This document shows positions 13,001-55,472 of a DNA stretch of 64,000 nt, piece after piece. The stretch lies in the NCBI GenBank assembly GCA_965202585.1, contig OZ241830.1, positions 26,288,001-26,352,000 on the forward strand. Direction: 5' to 3'. Position numbers and translations under genes: made by a program. Source of the DNA: Thalia democratica (lineage: Eukaryota). How positions within the stretch are numbered: position 1 is the first letter of the stretch; each line of letters begins with the position of its first letter. A model generated the notes under the pieces. The model searched no databases. It was not told where the DNA came from and was given only the letters and a program-made list of their open reading frames with translations.

Positions 13001-16000
13001 ATTGTAATTTTTAATAAAAATTATTCACGTATACAAACCTTATAAAAAACATCTGTATTTTATTGTATCAGCAACAACAGTAGACAGTATTTTAACATAC
13101 CCTTAAAAGACCACCAATTTGAGAAGCAATGTAGGCAAACAGTATGTAGATCAGTCCGAAGAAAATGACGAGAAATCTGCTGAGATTCTTGTAACTTTTC
13201 TCACTCCAGTTAGTGTAAGGCCTGATGAAATCTTCCAAACTCACGCAAGCCATCGCGTTTATTCCCGATGATATTGTGCTGTTTGAAAATGTATTTCTAT
13301 AAACTTTTGTAAAGTAAAATTGTAAACTTCTCGACTTTTTTACTGCGAATGTAATTTGTAAGTTAAAAAAGTTACTGAAATTAATACAAACTTTTCTAAG
13401 CTTTAAACTATCTTTATATCTTTTAGAAGAAATTTTCACAAAATTTTTGCGCAACAATTTGTTGCTTTTTCGATAAGTTATAACAAAGTAGTTAGTAAAT
13501 ATAAGTTAGTTTGTATAATTATGATAATCAATTTGATTATAGAAAAAACAACAGAGAAACTAACCTCAACGAACTGCTGTAAACACCAGCTACAAACATT
13601 CCAGGCACGCCAGGAATATAACTTAGAATATCCATTACTATGAAGGGAAACAGCTGTAAAAAGAATTAAAATTGGTCATGTTTTATATAAATAGTTAGAT
13701 ATCTTTAAAGTCTGATTTTGTGACAGTCTACATTTTTAGTTATTGAAAGCGAATTGTATAACTGTTTGTAACTGAAATACTAAAAAGGTAGTAAAAAATT
13801 GTGTATTAAATGTGAATGACAAGCACCACAACATAGCAATTCAGCATAACCTAGTGTCGTAAAAAATACAACTACAAATATAAACTGTATTGTAAAACAT
13901 AAAATGAGCCAATAAGGTGTTAGATACTTTGCGTAAACAGAAAAAAGTTATAAAAAATAGTTTTTTAAAAGTTATTGTTTTGAAATAGAGCTTTGTAATC
14001 TTAATATTAATCTTTACTTGATCGCCTTTATTGATTTGACCGTTTTTAATAGGATCACAGTTCTTGTAAGTCGAGTATATCACCAATCCGGTCATTCCCG
14101 CCAGAACAAGGATTATTATCAAACCTACGCTGTTCAACATAATGGCTCTGTAATAAAGTTTAAAAGTATTTAGTTTAATAAAACTCATCAACATATTAAT
14201 TTCATTTTTAATACATAAATAAGGTAAAAAATCAACCAGCTTAAGTTTTTAAGTTTGCATTAAATTTATCTTAATATAACAAAAAATTGTCACTTGCATT
14301 ACTAAAAAAAGCATCAACTTAAAAAGCAATAATGTTGTTAATTTAATGTTATAATAACAGTAATTGGCCGCAATGAAAAAAAATCTAGTATATTAAGTAA
14401 TTTACAGTTATATTTTTTAACATTCTTGACGATTTGTAGATAACTGAAGAACGTTCAAAAATGTTCATTATAAAGTTTTTTTTGTTAAGATGCTTACATT
14501 TTTGCATGTCTTTTACTTTTGCAGCAGACGTATCTTTGTACTTGGGCCTGATTGAGACCGTTTGTGGCAAGCCAAAACACTGTGCCTCCGATTGTAATCG
14601 ACCAAAACGTGTGCCTTATTCTCGGGTCTAGCTCAAAGCTGTTATAAAGTTGGTATGGTTTTACTTTTATAAAGTTGGTAGAAACAAATTTTATGTAATG
14701 CAATTAAAAAATTGTTGAAATTTACTTTACATTTGTAGTATTGATAAAAATAGTTTTTAAACAGTTAAACTGCTGAAAAACTTTCTGTAAAGTAAATATT
14801 TCAGAGTGAAGCATTTTAGGTTGATTAATATTTTTCTGATGTCTTATGCTACCAGTTTGTATCAAATAGTTTGTTCAATTACTAAACATCAACGACAAAG
14901 AGAAATATGATTTTACCAGTTTTACGAGAACATCAATTAGCTTAACAAAATCTTGTTCAACATTCAACAAATTATAATATGATTCAAGCGTAAATTAATG
15001 TTCACAAATATAAACGAAACAAAAACTACCACAAGAAACTGTTTTTTGTTTTAATAATTATTACCCGTTTATAAATATTTATATATTTTTTTATAATAAA
15101 ATTCAGCATGTTATTATTTATCTTAAAACCAAATGTTTATTTTTTTCAATTTTTTTGTTGTTTATTTTTTATTCAAACACTCTTAATTAAACTTCACGAG
15201 TATCAAAACAAACTGGTTGAAATCGATTCTTCCCCCATCAACTGCATCCCTCCATATGTTCCCGAACCCTCCCTGATTGATCGATCCCTGAATGATGACT
15301 GCTACAAATCCGAACATCATCACCACTGTTTGGATCACGTCCGTCCATATTACTGCTTTTAATCCTCCCTGAATGTACAGTGAAATAAAGTAAATTGAAG
15401 TACTAATGTGCGAAAACAAAAGATAGGGCTAGTTTATTTTAAAGTGAGATGAAGCTAATTTTATGCTTTTTATAGCAGCTAATTAATATTTATGAACATA
15501 GAACTAATAATAAATTGTTTTTAGTTCAATGTTTTCTTGTTTATTTTTAGGTATGAGATATACAAATCAAGATGTAAACAAAGTTCTAAATTACTTTGAT
15601 ACAATAACTTAGTTATAAAACTTTAAAAGTTTATTTTTTGTAACTTTAAAATTTTTGACTTTTATTAATGTTTTAGAAATGCAAGCAAGTAGTTTTACAA
15701 ATAATTAGATTAAAACTATCGCACTGTTAATAAATTACAAAAAAAGCGCAATTTTTAAGCTCTATAAACAGTACAACTTCAATAAAACTGTCAAGTATGG
15801 AATGTTAATTTGACTAAAATACTTTAAAAAAAGTTAAAACAATTAGATTTTTAAATTTGAGATACAAAGTTTTATATCTATAAAACGTTTTGCATACTGA
15901 CTTAGAAAATTGAAATTGAAGAATTATTAATAAACTAACTAATGAAATATAGAACATACAACAAACTTGTTAATTAAGGGTAAAATATACAAAAACTAAC

Positions 16001-20520: not shown

Positions 20521-23271
20521 ATTAAAGTTTTTAAAATGGATATGTGTAAATTTAAAGTTTGTAAATGGTTTCAGTATATTGCACTTTACTACATCAAACG
20601 CAAAAAAAAATTGTTTTATCAAAAAAAATCATAAATATTTAACTTTGTTTGATTGTTTTAAAGAAACAGATACAACTACATGTTTTTCTTTATAAAAAGT
20701 TACCTTAAGCTAAAACAAATCGACTGCTTTCTCCTTTAAAAACACGTGAAAAATCTAAACAATACTTTTTCAAGCTTCGTATCGATATCAAAGTGAAGAT
20801 AGATTCAGTTCTCAACTCATCTTATTACGATAAGACCTTAAGAACTCAGACAACTGTAACTTATAAATGCAAAATATCACCACAAAGAAATACTATAAGT
20901 AGTACACACGAGACTGCAAATCATGCGTCGCGAATCGGTTATTTAAGTTCACTAATTGCTAATTAGTTGTTTGTTAGAAGCCGCACAGCTAAAAAGTAGT
21001 ATCAAAGTTCATTTGTCTGTTAGAAATATTTCTGTGTGCAAGTTTACAGTTGTCTTGTTGTTAATTTGCATTTATTTTACAGTAACCTCTAAAACTCATA
21101 AAAAAATTCAAATTGGTATTTAAGTCATTCCCGTCAATTTAATATCTGGTTAATTTGAAACAGCTAAAGCAAATTCTTCTAAATTAATTTCTTTTTCCGG
21201 TTCAAACTTACCAAAACACTTGATCATTTTATCGTGAGTATACTGTAGGGCCAATCTAACAATTTTTTTTACATTAATGTTGTAAAATTGTAAACAACTA
21301 ATTAGCGATGACCAGTTAAGATTTTGATTTTCAAATAAAGACTCAAGATAAGATTTTCAAGCCTTACTTACACTAGATACCGACGTAAAAGGTAGTAGAG
21401 TTTAAAAATTTCATTTTATTACTATTTTTGATTTATACTGTATAAGCTTTGTTTGTTTTTATATTTTCTTAAATTTTTATTATTCTATTAGTTATTATAA
21501 GTTGGTATATAAGTAACTAATGATGTAATGAAACAAGTCTATTAGTTTGACAACACAGAAGTATCCACTGTAAATAATTAAACTAAAGTAATTTATAATA
21601 AATTTTCAATTTTGATGTCTGTTAGACAAAAAAATAAATGTTTTATTGGATTTTGTTTGACTTTTTTTTTTGGTTGTAAGTACGAAACAATAATTAGGTT
21701 AATAGTTTGATTAAAGTTAAAACTAAAAATAAAATTATCACTATCTGATTTAACTCAAAACACTTTTTGTGTTTAAATGTCAAAACGTTGGTGTACTATT
21801 TTTATTTGCTTTCTGATTTTCGAAATTGTCCTCAGTTTATTAGCTCAAAAGCTAAATCAAATAAATCAATGTGCAAATATTTTTGTTTCAAAATAACTAG
21901 TTTCGGTAGTTAAAACTAGTTTCGGTAAATTTTACAAGTAATTGTATAATTTTTAATTATATCATTTTAAGTTATGTTTTATATATTATTATAAATACAT
22001 TATTTATAATGGTCAGCTTTCCTCATCGAAACTAGTTATTGAATAACAAAAAACTTTTATGCACTTATTTATCTGGTTAAACTATTGTGTAAAAACTTAA
22101 AACATTATAAAGGGTGTCTAAACTTAAAAGTTTGTTATTCATTTAAAAAGTTAGTGAATTCAGTTTTAAGTTTTATAGTTGAAGAATTTATTTCATAAAC
22201 CTTAATGAAAAAAAAACCGTCTTTAAATTTTAAATTTATTTATTCTTATAACAATTAAAGTTCTAAAAAATTGTGCATAATTTCATGTTTAAAGGGTTTC
22301 ATTTAAAAATAGCGTAACTTGTTCATAAATCAAATAAATATTCCAAGTTTATGTTTTGTCGCATTGATGTACTGTAAAGCTACTATTTAAATTTTACTTT
22401 ATATCAACTTATATATATCGTGTAATCACTAGTTTTAATGATTATATTTTTTAATAACAATCAATGTTAAAAAACAATTAAAGTTGATTATTTATTTAAG
22501 TCAAGTTTTAAAAGGTTTTTAGTAAGCATTATTAAGCAAGTCTTAAAATGATTTACTAATAGTGTGTAATGTTGAATAAAACTCAAACTACAAACTAAAT
22601 TGAAAAGTTTTAGGCAAGATTATAACTTCAAAACAAAAATACGTCAACTATAAAAAAAGTAGTTTTAATGGTATAAAACTATCTTTTGTTCATAAAAAAT
22701 ATAATACATGAAAGCTAGCCTAAACAAATATAAATATAGCTTTTGAAATATACTAAGAGTTGTTTTTTTTAAAGAAAAATTACACAAACTTAAAACCCTT
22801 TACTAGTTTTGCGCTGAAAGCTTTAAAAACAAAATCGTTTTGTTTTGAAAACTTATGTGTATTGAAACAAACTTATTGTTTTTTATTGTTTGTTTTTACA
22901 GATAAGTTTAATTCACTTTATTCGATTTTGGTGTTCTATATAAACCCAAGTAAATAGTTTACAAATATATATTTTTTAAACAATGTATGCAGATGTAAAT
23001 AATTTTCAAAGCGTGTATAAAAACACTAATGAAACATAAAGTTGTTTTTGTTGTGTAAATTACTCATTTAGAAGTTTACTTAGTACTTGAAGTACAGCTA
23101 GATATTTAACAGCCAATTAAAATTAGAAATTATAAAGCCACAAAGTTTAAGTATGTTAATAAAAGTATTAACTATTTTTTTCTTTAATGATAAGTTTATA
23201 ATTTTATATTAAAACCAACTTAATTTTTTTACTACTCTCCTTTTTAGCATATTATTTTTTACAGAAACAAA

Positions 23272-26200
23272 ATGCCAAGTGTGTTTATTTCATTTTTGCT
23301 TTTCACGTTTGCACTTTCTTTAAAGTGCCCCTCACGGTTCGATCATGCCAGTGACAAGATTCCTTATTTGTACGAAAGCTACCACTTGTCTTCTTACATC
23401 CGACGCGAAGGTCAGTTTACTTACTTTCGAATTTAATAAATAAATCTGTTTTCTTGGCTAGAAAGTATAAGTGACGTTGTAGGTTATTGTAACGTTATTA
23501 GAGTATTGTTTTAAACAGTAGAAGAAAGCAAACTGCTAATTTATATATTTTAGTTAGTACACTTTTATAAATTTAATTTACAAAAAAAAAATCTAATGTA
23601 ATATTATAGAGCATTATACGTAGAACAGCCTTTTATAAATTGATTCTAGCTATAATGTGAAACTTAAACTGTAATAAGTTGTATTGTAAAATATAAAACA
23701 AATATAACACACACAACTGTAGGAGCATGGGTGGACTTGTATCATTTGGAAGTTTCCAAAGACACAAAAAACAACAAGCAGAAGACGATACTGCAACAAT
23801 CTGATTATTATTGGACGAAAACTGAGCTGACAGACGATTATGACGTAGACCAGCAGTTTTACCAGCAAGAAAAAGCTTATTATAACAATGGTAAAATGTT
23901 CAAATTTTTGGGAAAAATTTGTGTAGTTTTCATATAGTTCAGATTGTCTGTTTGAAAGCAGTTCAGTTTTTTAAGAAAAAAGTAAAATTTACTTATAGGT
24001 GTAATAAAAAACACATTATTTTTATTCGATATTACATAGTTTTTTAAATGTTACTAAGTTCAAAAAAAGTTATGAAGTATAAATATGTTATGATTTTAGT
24101 TAAACAAAGTAGTAAGCTCCAACTAACTTAAGTTAAATAAATTTTAAGATAACTTATAATACTGTCGGTAAAAAAGCTTGGTTGGTACGTTAGCATTCTA
24201 AATACGATTTTTGTTTAAAAAGTAAAGTTTTCAAAGTTTTTTATTTCAATATGACTAATACGCTTTGTGTACAACAAATTATTTGAAACAGAAAGAACTA
24301 CATAAACAATTACAACAATAGCTATAAATATTAGTTGTATCAAATGAAACTCATTTTATGATTTTAAAATAGTAAACAATATATGTGTTATAAGGTCGTA
24401 TTGTTAGGTTACAATCAATAAAAAACAAAGTTAGTTTAAATATTTATACTCAAAGTAAAAAATACCTAAATAACTTATTGTTTACTAATATTGTAAGTAA
24501 CCTTGACTTGGTTTCAATTCCAACTCGAAATGCATTTTTTAGATACTGATACTGTGGTTGTAAACAACACATGCACTGTAAATGATTTGAAGAACAAGAA
24601 ATCGACAATATTTCACCATGAAATAGACACAACCGTGAAAACTAGCAGTGATGTGGGGTTCTTTTTCAATCAGGATTATCCTGCTGTTACAACTGTTAAT
24701 TTGTTTTTGCTTTTTTATTTTGAAAAATGAAGTAATTTTAGATTTTGTGAAGGTTTTTTTGTCAACAAGTTTACACCATCAAAATGTTTTTTTTATTTTA
24801 TTTTAACACTGTTTAAGTTGTTTAGGGTTTTAAAAAGATAATTTAGGTTTTTATATGATAATAAACGTTAAGGTATGCCTACATATAAACGTACTTTTTA
24901 AAAGTTTTATGACTTTTGTATCTTATTTGATATAAAAAATTATTTAAATTTATTCAATAATTTGTTCTAACACATATCTAATATAGTAAGTCAATGTCAT
25001 ATACTTTATTTAACAGTTAAAGTTTACTTTAAAATAAAAGCATTTTTATTCTATAAGTAAACACTTCTTTAAATTTATAGTACATAAATAACTTAACTTT
25101 AAATATGTAAAAATTTGATAAAATTTAATTAAAATCTTTAAATCACTTAAAAAAAACCTCATAGTTAAGTTAATCAAAAATTTTACAATATACAGCAAAA
25201 TAACATCGAAAAAACGATGAACTATGAGACTTGTATTCTCTTCAAAAACAATAGTATTAGGTATATTGTGAAGGTTCAATATTTGTTACACTGGTTTTTC
25301 AACACACCTACACAAATAAATTCGGTTACCATCGACGTTAGTTTGCATCAAATAGTTTGAGCTACCTTTTGTAAAGGATTTGTACTTAAGCAAAGCTTAT
25401 AGTTTTACTTGCTATGTATAAAAACTATTAAAGTTTTCAAATGTAGTTAAAAGATGTTTTCCTATTGTTTCATAAAACATTTTTATTAAGTTTTTTCGAA
25501 ACAAAATTCAAAAATAATTAAAGTGTAAATCTAAGCTTAAAATATTTAAACAAACTTTGTCGTATTCTGTATTTTTGAAAATTGTGTTAATTTTTTTGTA
25601 TGACTAAAAAGTTTTTAGGCTTTTAAATAAACGGTTTTTCACTAAACAAAAGAACACTTGAGTTAAAACTAGATCTGCTTAAAGTTTATTTAAATTTAGG
25701 CGACTGATCAATCAGGTAATGATTCAACAACTACTTTTTATCTTGAAGACTACAAAAAGCTAACTGATTTCACCATTGAAAATCCTCACAATATGATTTG
25801 TGAAGGTTGTTTTACAACTATAAAAACTTACTTACAACGTGTGAAATGTTTTCTTAAATTTTTTATCTTATTGGTGTACAAAAATATCAAGTTGAATTAT
25901 AAATCAAAAATGTTATGTTTTAATTTAGTTAGTAAAACTTAAATTTAAGAAGTCTGAAAAATTTTTTAAGCTATACACAGTAAAAAAATTGACTATAACT
26001 AGATCATCTTAGTATATTTCTAAACTTAATGTTGATAGTAATTTTTTATTTTTTATCTATAGAGCGTATACCTTTTGATAAGAATCTTACTTTAAGAAAT
26101 GAGTTTACTATAACTAAACTTGCTTTAAACTGATATTAGCTATATATTAACAAAATTTACAACTATTTTAGGAAGAAAAGATAATCCCAATTTACAACTA

Positions 26201-29200
26201 CCGCACTTCAATCAGAGTAAATTGCACTTACTTACAACTGAACAGTTTAACTACGATGTAAAACCCTCTATTGTGACTGAAATGTTTTTTGATTTTACAA
26301 GGAATTTTTCAAGATTTGTTGTTAATTACAAGACTAACTAGTAAGTTATTAAAATGAGTAGTTTTGATTATTTTAGTAAATATATAGTTATTATTAGTTA
26401 TAACTCATGCTAATACTCGTCAAAATGTTTTAAATGATTATTTACCCACTAAAATACTTTTTATTAAATTTTTAATAGCTAGATGATTATTTGTTAGATG
26501 ATTTTTATACTGTTGTATATATTTGCTAATTCTTTTTAGTTTTACGACCTAGTAGGTTAACTAAGTTTTATAAGTGCTTGCTTAAGTTTATGTAGTTAGA
26601 TAGATTATATAGTGTTATAATATTATGTTATAGTGTTCTCAACGGAAATGAAAGTCAAGTTTACAAACTTTCAAATGACGGATGCGAAATTTTGAAAGAA
26701 AACCCGTTTAAAGAAATACTGTCGTCTAAAAATGGATTTGTGAGTTTAACTTAGAAAAAATATGTGCATTAGTTTGAAATATAACAAAAGTTTTACATAG
26801 AATCTGTGCCGTAATGTTTAATTGTATTCAGTTAAAAAATGGAAAATAATTACAAAGTTATCAAACAAGATAGTAAGGAACACATATTTGAATAAGTAAA
26901 AAAAAACAACATTTAGCTGTTTATACAACCTTTTAAAGGTAGCTATCAACCAGAAGTTAGAATTTCGATAATATTCATTTTAGTTATCTAAGAAAAGTTT
27001 AAACGACCTGTTATCATTTGACGAGTATAAATATGGAGGATCTACTTACATTACGCCTGGAAAAGTATCTGAACTCGTAAAACATTATTTCTTTCAAAGA
27101 TATACAAATTCAAAAGTTTGTTTCTAATTTCTTAAATTGATAGATATTTAAAATTTATATTTAGTTAACGACTAAAAAATTTATTGTCTTTTATAAAGAC
27201 ATTATTTGCTAGAAAGTTTGAAATAGTTTGAAATAGTTCTAGTCATGTTTGTTACTTAAATAGTTTGAGACTTTTTAAAATACACACACTTTTTTGGAAC
27301 AAGTAAAAAAAAATTATAAACCAATTACTTTTTATCAAAACTGAACCTTAGTTAAACATAACAAAATAAAACAAAAATATTTATTAAATCCTTTTTACTT
27401 AGTTTTACTTTTTTTAAAACTCCACATTAATACATACAGGGTGATGTTGTATTAAACAAACTAACAGTGAATCAAAACAAAACATCAGGAGAAATTGTTC
27501 TCTCACAAATCGATCATGGAAGGTTCACTGCAGGGGAAGACGTAAGTTGTAAACTCAGTATTGTTTAAGACACATTTTTGTTATCTAAAAAGTTTTAAGT
27601 CCATCTTGTAAAAATTTAAACAGTAGAACATTTTATAAACATAATACATTTTTTTTAGTTTTTCCTACTTTTAAAGCAGATAAAGCATATATTATGTTGA
27701 AATAACGTTAATTAAAATAATAATAAGATGCAATTGGCTGCAAACACGACTCTGGTGTTAGAAGAAGTAAACACAAATGTTAATGTCGAAGATTTTGACG
27801 TTTCTCAATGCTTTGTGAACAAACCGATGAACTTTTATGTCATTCGGTTTGGTGAAATTGACTACAACGACTTAAGTTTTTTGAGCGAAAATTTCTTAAC
27901 TTTTAAAAGTTAGGTTTCATTAATTGTAACATTAGTATTTAATTTCTTTATGGATTACTTGCTTTTTAATAAAAAAAATCATATTGATCTATCTCTATTG
28001 ATATCTGTGTAAAATAAATATAAATTTTTAGTAATTTTTCCAGAACTACTTATCTCGAAATTAAGCAAGCTTATTGATGTTGACCATCTGAAGATCAATA
28101 AAGACATAAGTTATTATAGACACAGCAAACAGCTTTTTGTCACTTTTTCCATCCTTTGTACTTCTTTTAGTAAGTTTATCGATCAAACTTATCTTTACAT
28201 CAGTTACAGGTTTATATAACACTTTCCTCAGGTTTGTGTTAAAGTCGTTGTTTTAGTTTCGACTAGCTAAAATTAAAGTAAAACAACTGCAACTCTTTGT
28301 TTTTTTTTCTGGCAACGTCCTCGAACTTTGAACGACCAACTACCTTTTAGATCAAAAGTAGTTAAAACATTTTTTTTAAATTAATTACTAGGATATCAAA
28401 GCTTGTAGTATTGTTAATTATAGCAACCTGCCGCTTAGGTACGCACTGTCGATTTACCGGAACTTTGCGCTGCGTTCAAAGTTCATACCTAAGCAACAGG
28501 TTACGGTATAGTTTTAGCTTGGTAAATAAAAAATATTCTGAGTATATTCAACAGTATAAACATGTTAAAATACAAAATAGTAGTAATTTTCTTTTTTTTA
28601 TTTTGTTTATAACAAATGTTTATATATTAAAGTATTTATTTTTTTACTGTTTAAAGGTATAGTCAATTTATAATTGTATAAACTTGTCTAAGTATAGGAT
28701 TTAAAATAGTGCACATAAGTATGTTATGTAAAATATATCTTCTTTAAAATAGCTTGATAATTCAAGTGCTTGGTTATAATTAGTTCATTAAAGTTTTTTT
28801 TTTTACTAAAACACGATATTTATTTAACTTTATACAGCTGAGCTTGAAAACTCGCATTTAGACAAAAAAATTGTTGAAAGTCTAAACAGGGAGCTGATAG
28901 GAGGAAATTTTTTTATCGAAATAATCAATAAAAATACCGTGAGTTGCTTTACATTGCATTATGAAAAAAAATGTGTCGAAAGTTATGATTGATAGAAAAA
29001 TTTATATACAATATTACTATAATACTATAAACTTATTTTTAGTGTTCAGATGACAAATTCAAAAACTTAAACTTTTAAAACTATTTAAAAAACACGCAGT
29101 TACAAAACAACAAAAACTTTAATTTTTAAATTATTTTATTTAAGAAATATTATTAAAATAAAAAGAGTTCAGTTGTAATAAAGTATTTACAATTTTTTTT

Positions 29201-29437
29201 TGTTACTATATTCTTAATTACGATTGCATTTTGTCTTTACAGACTTTAGTGTTGAAAGCAGAAAACGAACCGTTGATTACATCACAAGCTTTTTTCAACT
29301 TGAAAAACCACAGCCCAACAATTCCCGTTGTAATTGCAGTATTTGTTACTTTACTGGTCGTTGTTGTGTTGCTAACTTTAGCATTTGTGTTCAGAAAACA
29401 TTTATATAATATGCAGTTCAATTACAAAGTTTGGTAA
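23272..29437 (+). CDS. Type I membrane glycoprotein, paralogue A (605 aa); probably two LolA/ependymin-like domains plus a membrane-proximal domain
   Basis: 13 phase-consistent exons: 23272-23410, 23723-23890, 24543-24694, 25196-25336, 25700-25805, 26172-26340, 26634-26739, 26984-27115, 27440-27541, 27728-27908, 28044-28169, 28838-28938, 29243-29437 (1818 nt including TAA). Signal peptide MPSVFISFLLFTFALS; TM IPVVIAVFVTLLVVVVLLTLAFVF; tail RKHLYNMQFNYKVW. Fold assignment is inference. Confidence 0.9.
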
Positions 29438-30224
29438 AAAGGGTCTGTATAGCTTTTTCTTTTTTTTCTTTTTCTGATTAATTTCTTTGTTCTCATTTAC
29501 TTGCTATCTGTTCTAATAAAATGATTAAAATTACAGGTTTTATGTATTTTGAAACTTAAATTAAATTTAAACAAGTATACATTTTAAAAATGTTCTCAAC
29601 ATTAATAAAACTTATTTGCATTATACTGTTATTACTGAAAAATCGTGACGACTCGTTTAACATTTTTGGTGCCAATAACTTATATAATATTTAATAATTC
29701 TGTAGGTTATTAGCCATGAAACATCATTTTTCATTATTTAAGTGTTTACCAACATCTGGGTTGTGTGTAAATAAATAATATTACAAAATATAACAAACGT
29801 AAATAGTCTTTAAAGTTTAAAATTTAATATGAATATATAAATTTAATTTAAATCTTAACTTTTATGTTGCAGTTTAAAATGATCAATATACAATAACCAT
29901 GTTTCACATTGATTAATAAAAGTATTTCAGAAACCGGTTTTGTTTACTAAAAATCTCACTTGTTGTGTATTTAATTATCTTATTGATCTCAAAATGCCAA
30001 TTACAGAAAAGTAAATACTAAGGAATATGAGTTTTGTGAAAATTTGTTTTACTGATCGTCAAACCAACCTTACATAAGAAACTTAGTTTTTAGAACGACT
30101 TGTCATTTTCTAACGTTAAAAAATTTAATAAAAAAAGCTAAACGAAGTGGACTGCTGATACAAGATTGACCGACCCAAGGGCTAAACATTTATCTAAAAA
30201 TTTAAACTGAAGATCATTGTAAAC

Positions 30225-30496
30225 CAGGAGTCGGTAAACTGCGGTCGCGGTTTAATCTTAAACTTATACTTATAAAACAATGAAAACAGTTTCAATGTAA
30301 AAACCTCCATATAGGCTTTTAGTTTAACATTTATTAGTTATTTTCGTTCCCCTATTTTAGTTTGAAGAATATATTTATATTGATTACTACAAATATGTAG
30401 TAATCAATATAAAGCGGCCCGCGGACGACTTTCTGATATACAGTGCGGCCCGGACACTAGTAAAATTGTCGACTTATAAAAGGCGGCCGACCTCTG
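30225..30496. mobile_element. Degenerate hAT-type MITE between the two paralogues
   Basis: Imperfect TIRs CAGGAGTCGGTAA... / ...GCCGACCTCTG; flanks TTGTAAAC and GTGTAAAA (6/8 match, decayed 8-bp TSD); subterminal GCGGCC motifs. Confidence 0.7.
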
Positions 30497-30533
30497 GTGT
30501 AAAATAATGTTTCACAAAAATATAAAACGAATA

Positions 30534-30541
30534 TGACGTCA
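30534..30541. promoter_or_regulatory. CRE palindrome TGACGTCA about 1.1 kb upstream of paralogue B
   Basis: Sequence match only. Confidence 0.25.
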
Positions 30542-31678
30542 GCAAAACAAAATAAAAATTACAAATAAAATTTGTTGCTATGTTACATATTAAGAAACAC
30601 TCTCAAAAAACAAGAAACCTTCTCATTTTATCTAGTTTTTGTTGTTAATCAGTATTTTTACTTTTTTTTGCAGTAATTAAAGTGAAGTTTTTAGTGTTAT
30701 TAAAATCTTAATTATTGATATAAAGTGTTTTGGTTTTATAACTACTTACTTTACAATGAACTGCTATTTTACAACTATATAAAGCTTCAAACATTAAAAA
30801 AACATTAAAGCTACGTCCTTTTTTTTATAAAACTTTCTTGTGTTATCAGTTATAAATTACTATGATTAAAAAAGCTTATATAATATTAAACACTAAAACT
30901 AAAGTCTTCATACTGAATATGTAAAATATAATCAGTAAGTTTTGTTCATAAGCGAAAACATTTAATTAGTTGCGTTAGAAGCTGTTGTCCAAATAATGCT
31001 GTTTTCTTATGAAATTTAAGCTTTATACTAATAGTTTTTAACAATAATTGCTATTAATGAAGCAACTTTTGATAAGACTAAAACCATAAAAAATTTTTGT
31101 GTTAAATGTTTTGCAATACAAAACTACTTTAAAAAATATTTGTGTTATAAAACAAGTGATGTGTATTAAAAACTTTGTGTTTGACAAATAAGTTACATTC
31201 ATTTAACATGCGATTTGCTTTGTATATAAAATATTAAGGAAAAAACACTAGATAATACTAATTTTTTTAACGTATATACTTAGTTTTGATGCGATATTAA
31301 AATTTTTCAAGTTGTTTTTGATAAATTGAAAAACAATCAGTTTTATTTTGCTAGTTCTTTCACTTAATAAAATAAAATCTTTAATTTGTTTTATTGATAG
31401 CTTTATAAAGCGATTAACTTAATTCAGCTATTTCTTATTGTTAAATGTTTAACAGCAATTTGCTTATTCACTTGTTAGTGTAGTCCGAAACTTTATAACT
31501 AAATTCAAATCGGTATCTTTTTACATCTGACTTTTTTAATACACATATTTAGTCTTTTACAAAACATTTATTCATAAGGTTTTAAAATATTGAGTCGATA
31601 AAAAAAAATTCAAAAGAAAGTAATGTGTTTTTAAATTACCTTAAATACCTAATGTTTAGATATTTTTTAGAAGCAAAA

Positions 31679-34600
31679 ATGTTGAGATTGATAATTACGT
31701 TTTGTCTTTTCATTTGTGCTTTGTCACTAGAGTGTCCTTCAAGATTTGAAAAGGCAGATTCGAAAATTCCGTTTTTGTATGAAAGTTATTACTTTGAAGT
31801 GGATAAAAAATTGGATGCTTCAACTCAAGGAAAAGGTTATTTAAAACAAAAAATAATCTTCAGCATCTTTTAGACAAAGATACTTATTAGTTTTAAAAGA
31901 TTAATTTTTATTTAAGCTAAAATTCTAACGAAGCAAATAATTATAATAAAAAATAAGTTTAAACTTTTAAACAAACATTTCTTAGTAAATTAGCTTTAAA
32001 AATTTTATAAACTTAATTTAAAATAAGCAATTTTGAGTAAAAATTACCTTTTCAAGTAAATTATATTTATGAAAAATAATATTTTTAACACTTTTTATTA
32101 TCAATTTTTAAAATATTATTTTTATTAATTTAATAGTCCTTGATTTCTTTTAACTTTTTTCAAGCTAAAACTAAAATCAAATAAATTTAATTAAATTTTT
32201 TCTAAACTTACTTAGCTAAAGCAAATACTTAACAAATTATACTCAAAAGCTAAACCGTTTAATAGTAAAGAAAATTATTCAGCGAAGTTAATTTAGTGCT
32301 AAACATTTTCAAAAGGTTATATACTTTTTGTACTCTTCACATGTTTAATATAAGACATTAATAGTTTTTAAGAACATAGATTTTTATAATCTTCATGGAA
32401 TAATGTTTGTCTTAAATATATTTCAGATTGGTCAAAAACAATAGCGTCCGCAATTATTACAAAAGACTCGAAGAACAATAGAAAAAGCACAATATTAAAG
32501 CCACCGAGTCAATATAAGACAAAAATCCAGTATACAGACGATTATGATTACAAGCAACAATTCCGCCTAAAATACAACTATTTTGAGTCTAACGGTATGT
32601 TTATTTCTAAAACGATTTAATTTTGTATAAAGCTAATATATTACGTTACGAAATTTAAGCTTATTTTTTTTTACTATTTATTAAGCTTTCTTAAAAGTCT
32701 TGGAGCAAATTAGTAGAGTTCACCAAAGTAAAAATTTAAAGCTTTAGTAAATATTTTGGTGATTTTTTTGAAATAACTGTATACTGTATGAAAATGCATT
32801 CATATCACAAGCTTATAACAGGATAATTAACAAAAAGTTGAAATCAGTAATTTTTTTTTAGCTAAATAATATTTAAAAACCTTTTTACTAACATTTTATG
32901 ATAGATATTATTTATTATTATTATTATAATTATAATTTGATAGGTATTACTATTTTGTTCTAGTTATGTGTCTGTAGTGTTTTAAATACTTATACTGGAG
33001 CTTTAACATCATAAAAATCTTTAATTTTTTTTTGTTAGTTAGACTAAAGCTAAAGAATATAAATCATTCTCATCAACACTCAGCAAGTTTAAAAACAAAT
33101 TGTTCTTGACTAAAAAAGTATAACTTTACTAAACTTACTCCTACCACGTATTCTGCAAAACAGTCACAGATTAATAAGTAAATGAGGTAAAAACATTTCG
33201 TTTTCAGCTCAGCTCGGCGTGAACTCAACGTGCGCGGTGAGCGATTTGGAAAGCGACAAATCAACGATGTTTCACCACGACATCGACGACACTTTGAGCA
33301 CGAGCAGTGACGTCGGGTTCTTCTTCAATCAAGAGTATCCTGCCATCAAAACTGTTAGTTTATTAGTGTTTTCATTCTTTTTTTTTAAAGTTGTATGAGA
33401 GGAAAGTTTAAAGTTGTCTTCAAACAGTTTACATTAAAATTATATAATCAAATAAAAAGCTACCTATAGTTTGTTATTTTACAATTATTAAATGCTTTCA
33501 CAATGACCTTTTAGTAAAGACCTTTAAACTATTCGGCTATGTTTTAAGTTTTTAAAATTGTTATCAGAAAATAAAGTTATCTAATTATACAAAAAACAAA
33601 AAGTTACTTGGTAAACGGTATCTAACTTAATTTGAACATGTTGATATCAACTAAGTTTTTAATTTTTTAATTGCTTGTTCTACAACTTTTAGTTAATTTA
33701 CTTTTACAATAAATATACAATATACAGCAAAACGACACACACAAAACAATTTCCTATGAAACTTGCATTCTCTTCAACAACAAAAGTGTCATGTACAACG
33801 TAAAAGTTAATTATGGACAAGTATTTTGGTTTTTCTCCACAAAGTACCAGATTAAATCAGTTAATATCGACGTTAGTTTGAATACAAAAAATATTTTTTT
33901 TATACATTAAGTATAAAATATATAACAAAAAAAGTTTTTTGGTAAATTTTAAATTTTTTTACACAATTTAAAATTTATTTTGGTTTTAGTGTACGTAATA
34001 ATAAACAAAGGACACTGATAAAAATGGTAAAAAGTTCAAGCTGTACAAAATCCAATTAGTTACAAAAACATCCGCTAACACATTATCACAATAATAGAAC
34101 ATTTTTCTAGGCATCTTTACCCGACGGGCAGAAAAGATCATTGACTTTTTATATCAAAAACTATCTAGAGTTGACCCATATTGCACTGAAAAATCCAACA
34201 AACATTATATGTGAAGGTTGTTTGCTATTTTATAGCGTATATCACTTATTATTATTATTTATTTGACATAAGTTTTATGTATAGTAATTTAATTGGAAAA
34301 TTAAAAATAGTTGTAAATTTTACTTGTTGTTTGAAAATATCTAAGGCAAAACAATAAAGTTAAAAGTCCAAGTGAATCTTGAAAAAGTTGACAAAAATAC
34401 TCTTATACTTCAAAAAAAAATGAACATGATCGTATTTAAAATTTAGGTCTTAGCTTGAGACTTCTTACTTACAATTCTTCCTTGCAATTACTTAATCTGA
34501 CGCTTTTGTACCGATATGGTTTGTTAAAAAACAGTTGGAAACAAAATTTACCTAATTTGTGTTATGATAAATAATCTTTTACAACGTATCACTGTTAATT

Positions 34601-37600
34601 TAACTAAACTTCTAATTATAAGTCTAACAAGGCTCATACTTTTTCAGGAAGAAAAGACGTTCCAAATTTTCAACTGCCACATCTGAACAACGACAGATTG
34701 CATTTACTAGTAACTGAACAATTCCAATACAACGTGAGGTCTCCGATCGTTACTGAAATATTTTTTGACTTTGCAAAAAACTTATCAAGATACAATATTA
34801 ACTACAAAACTGATTAGTAAGTTGAAGTTGTAATTAGAAGTTTTAAAGTTGTTAAATGTTATAATAGTTATTAAACTGATATAGTAATTCCCAAACTAAG
34901 AGGACGATATTTGTTTAGTTTTTATAACGTTTATAAATTGTTGACTTATTAGTTAAAATACTAAATAATATTATCTTCCCTTTTTAGGTTATTTTGAAAG
35001 TGTAATGTATTAATTTTTAGAGAACTTAAAGAAACTTTGAAATCAAGTATTGCGACTAAAAAATTTATCATAAAGAGCTGTTATAACCAAAATTAGAATT
35101 TTGTAATTAATTCTATAATGCACTTAGTAATTTAAACTTGCAGCTTTTTTAACTAGCTTATATGTTTTTTTTCTTTTAAATGTAACATGTCACTTTAAAC
35201 TTTTAACATCATAGTGTTAAAGCTAAATAAGTAATTTATTAAATGTTTTAAAAAAACACAACTTTTGGCATTAAAAAACTCAATCCTTGAATACTAAAGT
35301 ATAGATGATCTAAATACGTATAAATGGCTAAGACCTTTCATCACTCTATTTGTTTTACAGTGTTAAAAATGGAAATAAAAATCAAGTTTACCAGTTATCA
35401 AAAGATAGGTGTGAAGTTATAAAAGAAAATGCGTTAAAAGAAATGCTATTTTCTGGTGAAAGTATTGTTAGTTATTTTTAAAAAATAATCAAAAAATAGA
35501 ACATTTTTATAAAATGATAAGATAACCTAACTATCTAACAATTTAGAGTTTTATAAGATAATGTTTTGAAAACAATATCTTATAAATGGTATAAAACAAA
35601 CGAATTATTAGATAATTTTTAGACTTATAGTTTAAAATATTTTTTATCATATTACTTTTTAAAAACACAAGATTTTCTAAAGTTTTGTAACATTAGATAT
35701 AACATGAAAGCTTTGGTTAAATAAACACGGTGAACAAAATTTCTAGAAGATAAATTTATACGAAAAAAAGAAAAGTTAAAAAAAATATGACATTTTAAAA
35801 ACAGTTATCTCTGGAAAGTATGATTGAACTATTTTCTTTTGATAATTACAAGTATGGAGGCTCATTTGAATACAAAATAACATACAAAAAACCTGTTCAA
35901 AGCTTTGCAAATTACTATTTCATTCACCAATATTTAGGCTCGAGTGTTAGTTTTCAAACTTGTTTAATTTACATAGTTAAATTACAATATTCAAAAATTA
36001 AAAAGTATGATAGTTATACAATTAAAAATAAAAAACATTTTCAATCGCAAATGACTTTTAAAATATAAAAAGCAAGTCCTAAAAAGTTGTAATAAACAAG
36101 TATTTAAAAAAAGCATTGAGATATTCTTAACCTTGTTTAAAAAAGGAACTAAAAACAATTAAAAATTTATAAACAGGGTGATTTAATTGTTAACAAATTA
36201 ACAGTGGTACAGAATAAAACGTCAGGAATAATTAAACTTTCAAAAATTTACCACAAAAGATTTAATACAAAGGTAAACTTAAGTTGTTGATTTTAATCCT
36301 ATATTTAAATAGTTAATGTACGATTTGTTATACTTATAAGAAAAACTTAAGTTTTCTCAAACTAGTAAACTGTAACAACAAATAGAGCACATGTTTTTAT
36401 AATCAAACTGTTTTTAAAGTACGAAACTCTTACCGATACGACTCTTGAGTTCGAAGAAATAAATACAAATGTACACGATAAAGATTTCGACGTTTCTCAA
36501 TGCTACGTAAATAAACCTCTTGACTTTTTTATTGTTCAACTTGGTGAAATTACTGAAAAAGACATGCTTGTTCTCAGTAAAAACTTTTACAGTTTTAAGG
36601 GTAAGTGTAAATTAACTTTTTTAATTCTTTTTAGTTTTACTTTTAGTTACGTAAATAGCTTATAATGTATAGCCTTGTGCTTATATAAAATATAAACTTA
36701 GTTTATATAAAAAGAACTTTAGTTTTAACATCAAAACCTAATTGTGGTTAAAACTACCAAAATTCTGGTTTACATGCCATTGCATAATTGTCTTTATTTA
36801 GTCTTTCTATAAATATGACTTGATTATTTTTTGTCGTAGAAATATTTGTCTCAAAACTGAACGAACTAATTGATGTTATTCATTTGAAAATAAACAAGGG
36901 TATAAGTTATTATCGACGGAATGGAAAATTGTTTGTTACATTTTCTATCTTATGCACTTCCGATGGTAAGTTTTGGAGATTTTTTATATGTTTGTTTGAG
37001 AAAAGTAAATACTTTTTTTTCTGAACGAATTAAAAATTCGTTTAACTTTTGTTTTATTTGAAAAAAGTATTTTTTCGAAATAGTTTTAAAAATTAGGTAA
37101 ATATATTAAAAAAATTTTGTTTCCAATTAGTGGGTTTAATGTATTTTACTAAATTTTTTTGAAAATTTAATGATTGTATATTTCTCTTTTATATAATAAC
37201 TCATTATACTTATGTACACTACTTAAATTTGTTTTGAATATAAACAAACTACTAATTATTAGAACAAAACAAAAACTAATAAAATAGGATATAAGTATCA
37301 GGATTAAACTCAAAATGTAATTTAAAAAAAATTCTTTATAAACATTATAGTACCAACAACTATTCTTACTGAAAAATTATACATATACCAGATTAAGGTT
37401 TTTTTAAATTAACATACTAAACATTTAATTTTTTCACAGTCATTTTATTTTATCATTATTTTCTCTCACTTTAAATAATTTTTTACATTTATTTTTTAGA
37501 AGATAAAGAAAACATGGTTTTGGATGAAGTTTTTATTAAAACTTTGAATGCAAAACTAGCAAGAAAAAATTTTATAATTGAAATTCCGAGCCAAAATTCA

Positions 37601-38084
37601 GTGAGTTATTAAATATGTAAATAAGTATAAATAAACGTCATTTTAAAAGTTTGAAGTAATACAAAATTCAATTAAAGTAGTGTTACCATTTATGTTACTT
37701 TTTTTTAAATTTTAAAACTATTAAAATTTATAGTTAAATTTACAAATTGAAAACATTTTTCAAATAATTTAATAACTAAAGCTAAAAGTTTTAAATTTTC
37801 ACAAATTAGACAAAAGTTACTTACATTAAACTTTACAGAAAAACAGTTGTACAATGAAACTTTAAACGCTTTTACAGACTTTAGTATTACAAGCAACGAA
37901 CGAACCACTCTTGACTTCAAGGAATATTTTAAATGCAAAAACAACAAACAACTGCAGCCCAACAACTGCAGTGATTATTGCCGTTTTTGTCACTTTACTC
38001 ATTGTTTTAGTAGCGTTATTCTGCGCATTTGTATCTAAGAAATATTATTATACAGGTCAAATTGATTATAAAATCTGGTCTTGA
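31679..38084 (+). CDS. Type I membrane glycoprotein, paralogue B (615 aa), tandem duplicate of 23272-29437
   Basis: 13 phase-consistent exons: 31679-31835, 32427-32594, 33208-33353, 33728-33871, 34111-34216, 34648-34816, 35361-35466, 35805-35945, 36177-36272, 36420-36600, 36840-36965, 37500-37600, 37878-38084 (1848 nt). Same intron positions and phases as paralogue A; shared blocks CPSRF, SSDVGFFFNQ[DE]YPA, ICEGRKD, FDVSQC, LFVTFSILCTS. Confidence 0.9.
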
Positions 38085-41000
38085 GGATATACCTATTCAT
38101 TTCTATCATTTGATTTTCGTTCATTTTGATAAATCAAAAACCTTTATTCATATGCATAAATACAGCTTCATTTTTATCTAATAAAGGTAGTCTACCGATC
38201 GATCCATTTTATACATTTGTTTTCTTTGCTTAAAAAGTGCATCGTATTAAGATCTTCATAAACTAAAAAAATTATTAGCAAGCGTATTTTTGTACACAAC
38301 TATCTATTTAAGAACTTGAAAAAGTTTTATACTCAAACTAGGTTTTATAACTATATGGAATCAAAACTTATTCAGTATACCTAGTTTAAGTAGTAAATTA
38401 TAAAATATTTCTTTTATAGATACTTAATTTTCAGTTGTTAATGTAACAGTTTTAATTAATTTAAGTTAAGAAATTTTATTTATAAAAAAACCTATTTATA
38501 CAAACACAATTTATTTATTCTAAGTTTAAAAGTTAAGACTTATTAAAATGTAAAATAAGCATGACTCACAAAAGATGTTTAATCAAGGTTTCTTAAACGT
38601 TGTTTAATAATTTATTTCAGCGCTTAGAGTTTTACTCACCATATAAAACTTACAGCCAATTTTGCCGAGCCAAAAGTAATTGCCATATTTTTTATCATTA
38701 TTCATATCATAATAGGCCTACTTCAACCCGAACTAGTCGTTTGTTTATTGTATAATGTTTGGTAATATAACAAAGTATCTAGTTTATTCAAAAGTTAGTT
38801 GCAACAGTATGTATATTAATAGATTTCCATACTATTTTGACTTTAAATTCATTGTTAACAGTTAATTTACAATTTTGAATATTAAATTGGGAAACTATAG
38901 AAATTCGATATCAAAATATCTCAGATAAACCTGCCAAAGATACTTAGGGCGAAGTTTAATTTAACGAATTAATATAAAATTTAAAAAGTTATTATAGTTT
39001 TTTTTATTTTTCAATTTTCAATATTTCACCCACGAAAAGTTTATGATTATTAAGTTTAAGTGCTCATAAGCTCGGTGCTAAAATAAAGTTTGTAAAATAA
39101 AAAAAAAAAGTTAAGCTAATTTGAACTAGTTCTGTAAAACTTGTAAACGTTTTAGAAACAATAAAAACTACTTGAGAGTTATATAATTAAGAACTACTAC
39201 TAACAAAAATAATTGAAAAGTTAACACTAAACAATTTATAAAAAAAGCTTATATGTTTTATAGTTTTTGCTAACATCAAATATTATCAAGTAAGTAATTT
39301 GAAGTCTAATTTTTTTTATCGTAGTTACTACACGTCAAAGTATTAAAATTCAACTTGAAACAACAATTTAAAAATTAAAGATTATTTTCAATAAAAATAT
39401 TTATTTTTTAATTAAGTTATAGTTCAACTGTATTTAGTTAAAGTTGAACTTCAACGATGAAAACTCAAAAATAGCATAACATACAGAATATTATTGAAAA
39501 AACTGACACACTTTATATTTTTGTTTTATTTTAAACATATAAGCTTGTGGTTTTAATAGTTAGAACGTTTTAAAACATTTACAGAAATATCTTAGATAAT
39601 TTTTGGTAATTAAGAACTCCATATAGATACTGATTAAAACTTATATAGCAAATTACTTTTAGTTTGAAGTTATTTTGGATTGATAATAATTTGTGTTAGT
39701 TAATTTCGAAATTGGAACATTAATTATTACTTGTTTATATCATTAGCTATAACCAAAATGTAGTCTTTAAGAAAAGAAACACATGCTAACAAAGTTATGG
39801 TGCAAATATTACTTGTTGTATTTATAGCAATGTTAGTTCAGTTATACTTTAATATTAAATTATAAATTAATATAAATTAACTTTCTTTATAGCTTCTGAA
39901 TAATTAAACTGGCTGAAAAAGTTGTTTTACTAGATCAAAACTATATATTATTTCATTGGAAAAAAAGTATTTCAGAGTTATTTATTAAAGTATGTGTTCA
40001 CTTAGTTTTTGAGCTGAAAAATAGAAGTAGTTTTTATGAAACAAAGGTCTACATACAAGTTTACTTACGTTTTTTTTCTGTTTGTTTTATATTATGTTAA
40101 TTATTTTAGTCAGTTAAGAAATAGTATAACTAATTCTAATAAATTACGTAAAAAAAAGTTAAACAATTTAATTAATTAAAAAAAAAAAGGAATTTGATTT
40201 GTAAAATATTTTTTTTAATTTTAAACAGTTTCAACAATAGCAAAAACGTTTATATCACTAATTTTAAATATTTTAAGTTCGTGCATATGATAAAAATCGC
40301 TATAAAAGTAATTTAGACAGATAAATTAACAGTTTTATAAACGTAGGTCGAACAAATCTTAGTCCAGTGAATTTTCTATACATACTGATAAGAGTGTTTT
40401 TAGTTCATAGTCAAATAAGAATTGACTTGTCTAAAAAAATTATTTCATTAAACTTCGTTTGAGTAGAATTAATAACAAATTTAAATTTTATTTAAAATCA
40501 AAATCTTTTTCGATTTTTTTAACCGGAAAAGTTTAACTGTAACATAATAAGGAAATATCTAACTAGTTTCAATTTAATTACATAAATTATGATCTAATTA
40601 CAAACATATTTATGCGAAATTCAACTTCTGGTTAATGTTAATTTTTGTAAATACTTAAAACCACGTTAAACATAGTACTAAAGCGTTTTAAAAATAAATA
40701 TTAAACAAACTGTTTTATTGAAAAGAAATAAGCGTTTAAAAAAGTAGTTTTCACTGTTAAGTAATAGTGCTTGAATAATTTTGTGATAACTATCACGTGT
40801 CCAGCAGTGAAATTATTGAAATGGTGTAAACTAAAATGGCAACAAGTTTATATATTTAAACTTATTAAACTACTGTTTTTAATGCGGAAGTAATATGTTG
40901 CTTACGGATGTACAGTTGTTTAAAAAATTAGACAATATAATGTAGTTAGTATAAAACACTGCATTTCTGTTACTAACAAAAACACTTACAATTGTTTGAA

Positions 41001-55013: not shown

Positions 55014-55472
55014 ATGAAGTATCTAGTTGTGTTTTTAGCTTTTCTCGTTTATTCTACATGCAACTGTACAGTACAGAAGTGCTACAGTTACGAAACCAAC
55101 GACCCGAGATTCAACAAATCCGATCCCAAAATTGAAACTTGCACGCCTCCTTGGAACGCTTTCTGCGCATCGGCGACCCACAAAAACGGCGAAGTTCCCA
55201 ACGAGACGTGTGAAGATGATGAGTATTGCACGGAACTCGGTTGTGTTGGTGATAAGTACTGCAAAGAACCGGGAACCTATGAACACGATTACCCGGGTTT
55301 GAGAAACGTGAGGTTCAGTATGACTTGCTGCAACACGAATTTATGCATTAACTTTGAAAAAGAATCGGAAACGTTGAACAGCGAAACTTCCAGCGCAGCA
55401 CAGCCTTCTAACAAAATTTGTTTTCATTTGTTGTTTTCCACTTTATTTTTAGTTTTCTTCATGCTTTATTAA
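55014..55472 (+). CDS. Intronless Ly6/uPAR (three-finger) domain protein with signal peptide and predicted GPI-anchor signal, 152 aa
   Basis: Single ORF; signal peptide MKYLVVFLAFLVYSTCNC; 10 Cys in the mature domain ending CCNTNLCIN; S/A-rich omega region, then hydrophobic tail ICFHLLFSTLFLVFFMLY with no cytoplasmic residues. Confidence 0.88.
   Translation: MKYLVVFLAFLVYSTCNCTVQKCYSYETNDPRFNKSDPKIETCTPPWNAFCASATHKNGEVPNETCEDDEYCTELGCVGDKYCKEPGTYEHDYPGLRNVRFSMTCCNTNLCINFEKESETLNSETSSAAQPSNKICFHLLFSTLFLVFFMLY

Follow-up and report, generated by a model that had tools for sequence, protein, structure and literature searches.

We describe here a tandem pair of genes, A and B, and the putative fold of the proteins that they encode, in a 64,000-nucleotide stretch of the genome of the salp Thalia democratica (assembly GCA_965202585.1, contig OZ241830.1, forward-strand positions 26,288,001 to 26,352,000). 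This whole stretch is referred to below as the window, and positions are counted from its first letter. The window has a G+C content of approximately 24% throughout. A six-frame comparison of positions 23000-29700 with 31400-38300 yielded 13 conserved and colinear blocks, from which gene models were built on the + strand by picking splice pairs that keep the frame and maximise the similarity between A and B. The spliced open reading frames (ORFs) are both complete, with 605 amino acids (aa) in A and 615 in B, and the features of the two genes are as follows:

23272..29437, + strand: gene A, 13 exons, 605 aa; signal peptide, half 1 (aa 19-235), half 2 (aa 236-435), predicted alpha/beta module (aa 436-560), transmembrane (TM) helix (aa ~566-590), 14-aa tail ending YKVW
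23272..23410, + strand: A exon 1 (aa 1-47); signal peptide, invariant Cys19 (23326-23328)
23723..23890, + strand: A exon 2 (aa 47-103); Asp60 and, at +7, Lys67; acceptor somewhat uncertain
24543..24694, + strand: A exon 3 (aa 103-153); invariant Cys113 (24572-24574), family motifs S-T-I-F-H-H and G-F-F
25196..25336, + strand: A exon 4 (aa 154-200); invariant Cys166 (25232-25234)
25700..25805, + strand: A exon 5 (aa 201-236); terminal invariant Pro-x4-Cys234 (25799-25801), end of half 1
26172..26340, + strand: A exon 6 (aa 236-292); opens half 2, Phe275-Asp276 invariant, Arg283 at +7
26634..26739, + strand: A exon 7 (aa 292-327); invariant Cys309 (26683-26685)
26984..27115, + strand: A exon 8 (aa 328-371); invariant Phe339, Tyr342 and Tyr362
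27440..27541, + strand: A exon 9 (aa 372-405); donor somewhat uncertain
27728..27908, + strand: A exon 10 (aa 406-466); predicted last strand of half 2 with invariant Phe428-Asp429 and Cys433 (27809-27811), then the strand and helix predicted to open the juxtamembrane module
28044..28169, + strand: A exon 11 (aa 466-508); part of the juxtamembrane module, with Cys504 confined to A and B
28838..28938, + strand: A exon 12 (aa 508-541); continuation of the juxtamembrane module in a helix-strand pattern
29243..29437, + strand: A exon 13 (aa 542-605 and stop); stalk, TM helix, tail
31679..38084, + strand: gene B, 13 exons, 615 aa; architecture as in A, TM helix aa ~574-598, tail ending YKIWS, invariant Cys at aa 19, 117, 170, 239, 314 and 439
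31679..31835, + strand: B exon 1
32427..32594, + strand: B exon 2
33208..33353, + strand: B exon 3
33728..33871, + strand: B exon 4
34111..34216, + strand: B exon 5
34648..34816, + strand: B exon 6
35361..35466, + strand: B exon 7
35805..35945, + strand: B exon 8
36177..36272, + strand: B exon 9
36420..36600, + strand: B exon 10
36840..36965, + strand: B exon 11
37500..37600, + strand: B exon 12
37878..38084, + strand: B exon 13; stalk, TM helix, tail, stop

Structure and divergence of the gene pair

The preliminary description of this locus, made from the letters of the DNA, had proposed a duplicated and diverged pair of 13-exon genes with shared intron positions and phases, encoding membrane glycoproteins with a signal peptide, many sequons, conserved cysteines, one TM helix and a short tail, and all of this is borne out by the reconstructed genes. 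GT..AG dinucleotides flank the introns at 24 of the 24 splice sites of A and B, the exon-end phases run 1,1,0,0,1,2,0,0,0,1,1,0 in both genes, and seven exons are equal in length between them. Alternative junctions are limited to the acceptor of intron 1 and to introns 2 and 9. A hydropathy scan of either protein reveals an N-terminal signal-like segment and a single C-terminal TM segment followed by a tail of 14-15 aa; between them lies a sequon-rich ectodomain of approximately 540 aa (11 N-x-S/T sequons in A, 7 in B). The hydrophobic N-terminus, the small residues before the first cysteine and the abundance of ectodomain sequons also correspond to the signal peptide and secretory route of the ependymin-related (EPDR) proteins, with which the ectodomain is compared below. 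Seven cysteines are common to A and B (19, 113, 166, 234, 309, 433 and 504 in the numbering of A, used henceforth), including all those singled out in the preliminary description. The gene pair, its topology and its conservation are thus confirmed. Immediately upstream of gene A, a polypyrimidine tract followed by an AG (23255-23271) ends seven bases 5' of the ATG. Trans-splicing is frequent in tunicates, and this AG could be the acceptor either of an intron in the 5' untranslated region or of a trans-spliced leader.

The two proteins are 52% identical, and the proportion of differing non-synonymous sites (pN 0.28) is well below that of synonymous sites (pS 0.73, which is saturated), giving an uncorrected pN/pS of approximately 0.38. 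The introns align at about 50%, the level of random AT-rich DNA. Because synonymous sites are saturated, pN lies well below pS and the introns have reached the random level, the duplication is judged to be old and both copies to have been held under purifying selection. Two samples, each from a different study, have DNA contigs in which gene A recurs nearly unchanged; the differences listed for its exons in the second sample include at least 7 synonymous and at least 6 non-synonymous ones. In run X3, the segments 26669-26997 and 27093-27409 of the window are covered by an additional contig version, approximately 11% divergent and with indels, alongside a near-identical one; this second version represents either a haplotype that has diverged or a close copy that was collapsed.

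The paralogue family

When the family profile of exon 10 was searched against the 800-Mb genome of the salp itself, it recovered 22 matches besides exon 10 of A and B, 21 of them at E < 0.02, on contigs C1, C2, C4, C5, C6 and C9 and on unplaced scaffolds, many of them as tandem pairs. Judging from these matches, A and B belong to a family of at least 20 loci, which the preliminary description did not include. Tandem or close pairs among the paralogue loci (L004-L029) lie at C5:3225587-3247973, C1:89762753-89772630, C4:35469781-35505256, C6:34049407-34091941 and C2:81.5-84.8 Mb, the cluster on C2 having at least seven members. Iterative exon searches of the paralogue DNA retrieved homologues of exons 1-13 with the same exon limits as in A and B; most paralogues were reconstructed only in part, the exons coming from a subset of the loci, and their identity to A is merely 35-45% in the best exons. 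Against this background of divergence, six of the seven shared cysteines (19, 113, 166, 234, 309 and 433) are invariant in every recovered paralogue exon, whereas Cys504 is confined to A and B. Other positions that do not vary across the family include, in exon 3, S-T-I-F-H-H and G-F-F; in exon 6, F-D; in exon 8, F..Y and Y; and in exon 10, F-D.S.C.

Two further observations concern individual paralogues. The last exon of the C5 pair (L012:6188-6751 and L013:6089-6730, both on the - strand) carries a Thr-rich repeat of about 100 aa, resembling a mucin-like stalk, before the TM segment, a repeat that A and B lack. Long retroelement ORFs (reverse-transcriptase-like and GIY-YIG-like endonuclease-like) lie beside or inside several paralogue loci (L013:9337-9867, L019:2355-3212, L020:5559-6662, L025:3810-4403 and L030:3216-6223).

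Stop codons interrupt exon 10 in three copies, all on C2, and these are likely pseudogenes. Their presence, together with the finding that no RNA run covers the stretch (the matching runs being DNA contigs), would favour an explanation in which A, B or both are unexpressed relics or mis-modelled chains of exons. This explanation is contradicted by the two frames, which stay open through all 13 exons and their canonical splice sites, by non-synonymous divergence well below synonymous, and by the retention of exons while the introns diverged to the random level; we regard it as very improbable.

Beyond this genome, the exon-10 profile found three exon-sized ORFs as the sole relatives among 1.8 billion representative proteins, with no full-length database protein of the A/B family among them. 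One relative, the ORF P0001, was traced to a 733-bp scaffold of the Tara plankton metagenome. Another match in the same library, P0003, is an fn3-repeat protein and was discarded as spurious, and two scans of JGI metagenomes for relatives gave no match.

Comparison of the ectodomain with EPDR and LolA-like domains

The preliminary description had further suggested that the ectodomain has a double LolA/ependymin fold. Two lines of evidence speak for this part of it. The first is a comparison with the landmarks of the EPDR proteins, in which the disulfide C113/C210 is near-universal and C42/C172 is conserved in several clades, and in which the most conserved sites are D70, R77, W151, P174, F191 and F204 (Wei et al. 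2019, PMC6363788). The six family-invariant cysteines fit the EPDR order, half 1 holding 19-166 and 113-234 and half 2 holding 309-433. By position, from which alone the pairing is deduced, the C113/C210-like pairs would be 113/234 and 309/433, the second cysteine closing each half, whereas Cys19, which follows the signal peptide without a gap, and Cys166 would represent C42/C172 in half 1. Half 2 has neither an N-terminal cysteine nor an equivalent of Cys166, so both partners of one putative pair are missing together.

The remaining landmarks can be followed through each half in turn. Half 1 presents Cys19, Asp60 with Lys67 at +7, Cys113, the G-F-F cluster, Cys166 and the closing P-x4-Cys234; the paralogues have I-Y-D followed by Lys-rich residues where A has Asp60/Lys67. 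Half 2 presents Asp276 with Arg283 at +7, Cys309, F339..Y342, Tyr362 and Phe428-x4-Cys433. All 10 of the sequences compared have Asp276, and an Arg or Lys occupies the +7 position in 5 of the 7 aligned exon-6 sequences, with the spacing of D70/R77. Given the family alignment of exon 6, AlphaFold2 predicts an antiparallel meander of three strands (predicted local distance difference test, pLDDT, 63), in which Asp276 ends strand 2 and the Arg lies in strand 3, as D70 and R77 do in EPDR1. Among the invariant aromatic positions, Tyr362 is comparable to W151 and Phe428-x4-Cys433 to F204..C210, with Phe142/143 being the candidates in half 1. At the position expected for P174, most paralogues carry Y-[VI]-P, encoded by exon 9, with no equivalent proline in A, B or half 1, and no clear equivalent of F191 was found. 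The order of the family-invariant residues is therefore suggestive of the EPDR landmarks, and not proof, because the mapping was made post hoc and depends in part on an EPDR1 sequence for which only the numbering of the residues quoted in PMC6363788 served as a control.

The second line is a protein language-model search with exon 10. All of its Pfam-bearing neighbours are DUF1571, DUF4292, TP_0789-like, DUF2092 and LolB domains, and the ten best were counted in one family or clan, which we take to be the LolA/LolB clan. In structural terms, the EPDR fold itself falls in the LolA/LolB superfamily (PMC6363788). A LolA-like fold has a curved antiparallel sheet of 11 strands with a hydrophobic groove.

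Several results weigh against a double EPDR/LolA fold, besides the post hoc nature of the mapping and the finding that no RNA run covers the stretch. 1) The language-model scores of the exon-10 neighbours (0.79-0.86) lie below the lead threshold of 0.9, and language-model searches with exons 6 and 2 gave no LolA-clan match. 2) Pfam searches (E up to 10) with all exons of A, 10 of the 13 exons of B and the paralogue exons gave no match to Ependymin (PF00811). 3) The Pfam Ependymin hidden Markov model (HMM), run in six frames over the 800-Mb genome, found no match in the window. 4) Family profiles of exons 3, 6, 7, 8 and 10, compared with all PDB chain sequences including EPDR1, gave only chance matches to unrelated helical proteins. 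5) The pLDDT of the fragment models of exons 6 and 10 is just 63-66. 6) The two halves show no match to each other by BLASTP (aa 19-235 against aa 236-435), and alignment of their family profiles by hhalign gave a probability of 0.1-0.3. 7) Some multi-domain EPDR models are fused gene predictions (McDougall et al. 2018, PMC6280359). These searches have low power, because single exons of 33-64 aa served as the queries and the family alignments are shallow (effective number of sequences approximately 2-3). Foldseek with the 55-aa exon 6 fragment model was uninformative, returning generic beta-meander matches only, at E above 0.5. A single weak genome-wide Ependymin candidate (L001) proved not to be a coding exon and was dismissed as spurious.

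Statistically, the internal repeat that the preliminary description had suggested from two D-x-x-x-N segments is not supported: both segments are present, but no similarity between the halves emerges from BLASTP or hhalign. Hints of a repeat are limited to two introns of phase 0 in corresponding positions (introns 3/8 and 4/9) and to the parallel motifs, and an internal duplication within A and B is not detectable at the level of these comparisons.

The same set of negative results speaks for a rival reading, in which A and B would be thaliacean- or tunicate-specific type I membrane glycoproteins with a beta-rich fold unrelated to EPDR/LolA and the landmark matches would arise by coincidence in a Cys-poor and aromatic-rich sequence. 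Every HMM and profile search was negative, no signal of an internal repeat emerged, and relatives beyond the genome amount to the three exon-sized ORFs, with none in the JGI metagenomes. Such coincidence would, however, have to account for the six cysteines and the five or more further residues that are invariant and stand in EPDR order and at approximately EPDR spacing, with one disulfide pair jointly missing from half 2, and for exon-10 neighbours drawn only from the LolA clan, which would be odd. We consider an unrelated fold a serious contender, although probably not the correct answer. The weakness of exon-level searches likewise leaves room for another known extracellular module (ZP, MAM, discoidin or a lectin-like beta-sandwich) that they would miss for its divergence, and a type I topology with a short tail is usual in ZP and MAM proteins. 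No Pfam or PDB match to such families appeared, even at E up to 10, and the cysteine number and the spacing of 94, 53 and 68 residues in half 1 appear unlike the patterns of ZP-N, MAM and discoidin domains. Cysteine spacing was the only ground for setting the ZP, MAM and discoidin readings aside, and we regard a module of this kind as unlikely. Taking the landmark order and the exon-10 neighbours together with the negative HMM and profile searches, we find a double EPDR/LolA fold of the ectodomain plausible, with the case for it and the case against it in approximate balance.

The part of the ectodomain closest to the membrane appears to be distinct from both halves. The exon 10 fragment model has a strand and then a 13-residue helix after Cys433, and exons 11 and 12 show family-wide conservation of strand-strand and helix-strand patterns. 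These models and patterns suggest that residues 436-560 form a separate alpha/beta module of about 120 aa with a beta-alpha-beta-beta-alpha-beta order, which the preliminary description had missed. The module recalls the SEA modules of membrane mucins in being an alpha/beta module of about 120 aa situated just outside the TM helix, and some paralogues add the Thr-rich mucin-like stalk. In contrast to SEA modules, exons 10-13 have no Pfam SEA match and the sequence has no G-S-V-V-V autoproteolysis motif, and the likeness is one of position and secondary-structure pattern only.

Two other features of the window were observed away from the gene pair:

55014-55472, + strand: single ORF of 152 aa, rich in cysteines (one stretch reads C-C-N-T-N-L-C-N), with a signal peptide and a C-terminus that is hydrophobic; reminiscent of a Ly6/uPAR-type glycosylphosphatidylinositol-anchored protein, but with no Pfam match
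13092-14194, - strand: two membrane-protein-like exon ORFs (117 and 121 aa) recalling a sodium:solute symporter, with only chance matches in Pfam

Proposed function and relation to known systems

The best available explanation of these observations is that A and B belong, as old tandem duplicates, to a large family of type I membrane glycoproteins that expanded in this lineage, the ectodomain combining two highly diverged EPDR domains with a compact alpha/beta module; we would put the prospects of this composite picture being right and being wrong at about the same level. The EPDR/LolA-like beta-sheet domains would occupy aa 19-235 and 236-435 of A, to be followed by the module at aa 436-560, the TM helix and the tail. 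Each EPDR-like domain might form a disulfide-stapled hydrophobic groove for a lipid or another hydrophobic ligand, as in EPDR1, and the TM anchor would tether both grooves to a membrane, on its outer or luminal side. The proteins may reside at the cell surface, or in the endolysosomal system by virtue of the Tyr-x-x-hydrophobic-like C-terminus of A and B; the Y-K-[VI]-W in question, absent from the other paralogues, could be a sorting signal. The diverged paralogues would then differ in ligand. The function is most likely that of a membrane-tethered binder of hydrophobic ligands, diversified across a large family.

Among known systems, the EPDR1/MERP clade (PF00811; PMC6363788, PMC6608618) shares with A and B the signal peptide and predicted N-glycosylation and, on the proposed mapping, the order and approximate spacing of the two widely conserved disulfide pairs, the Asp and the basic residue at +7 at the beta2/beta3 turn, the conserved second-shelf aromatic and the Phe before the C-terminal Cys. 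EPDR1 is, however, a soluble, single-domain homodimer of about 190 aa, whereas A and B have two putative domains, an extra module and a TM anchor; they also lack HMM-level similarity to EPDR1, the vertebrate C88/C222 pair and an equivalent of P174. Two-domain EPDR proteins are listed for the Basal-2 clade, including Ciona intestinalis F6YPW2 (Supplementary Data 1, PMC6363788), which also speaks for the double-domain reading. These are likened to A and B, by listing and not by sequence, in having two EPDR domains per predicted protein, as proposed for A and B, and in occurring in a tunicate, whereas a TM anchor and a third module are not reported for them. The bacterial LolA/LolB clan (LolB, DUF1571, DUF2092, DUF4292 and TP_0789-like) is linked to A and B as the language-model neighbours of exon 10, but its members are periplasmic lipoprotein carriers devoid of disulfides and have no HMM similarity to A and B.

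Ependymin-related proteins are widespread secreted binders of hydrophobic ligands, with mostly unknown functions. Tentatively, and with more doubt than confidence, we suggest that salps have undergone a radiation of at least 20 membrane-tethered two-domain EPDR/LolA proteins with an extra juxtamembrane module, too diverged for the family models to recognise, acting at the cell surface or in the endolysosomal system as binders or sensors of diverse hydrophobic ligands. Should the fold assignment fail, the family would still represent a sizeable set of lineage-specific surface glycoproteins in an ecologically important and poorly annotated group of animals, and in either case the curated exon models provide a starting point for annotation. 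If the assignment is correct, this membrane-anchored, two-domain and expanded form would extend the architectures of the LolA/EPDR superfamily, and would imply that current family models overlook deep branches of it.

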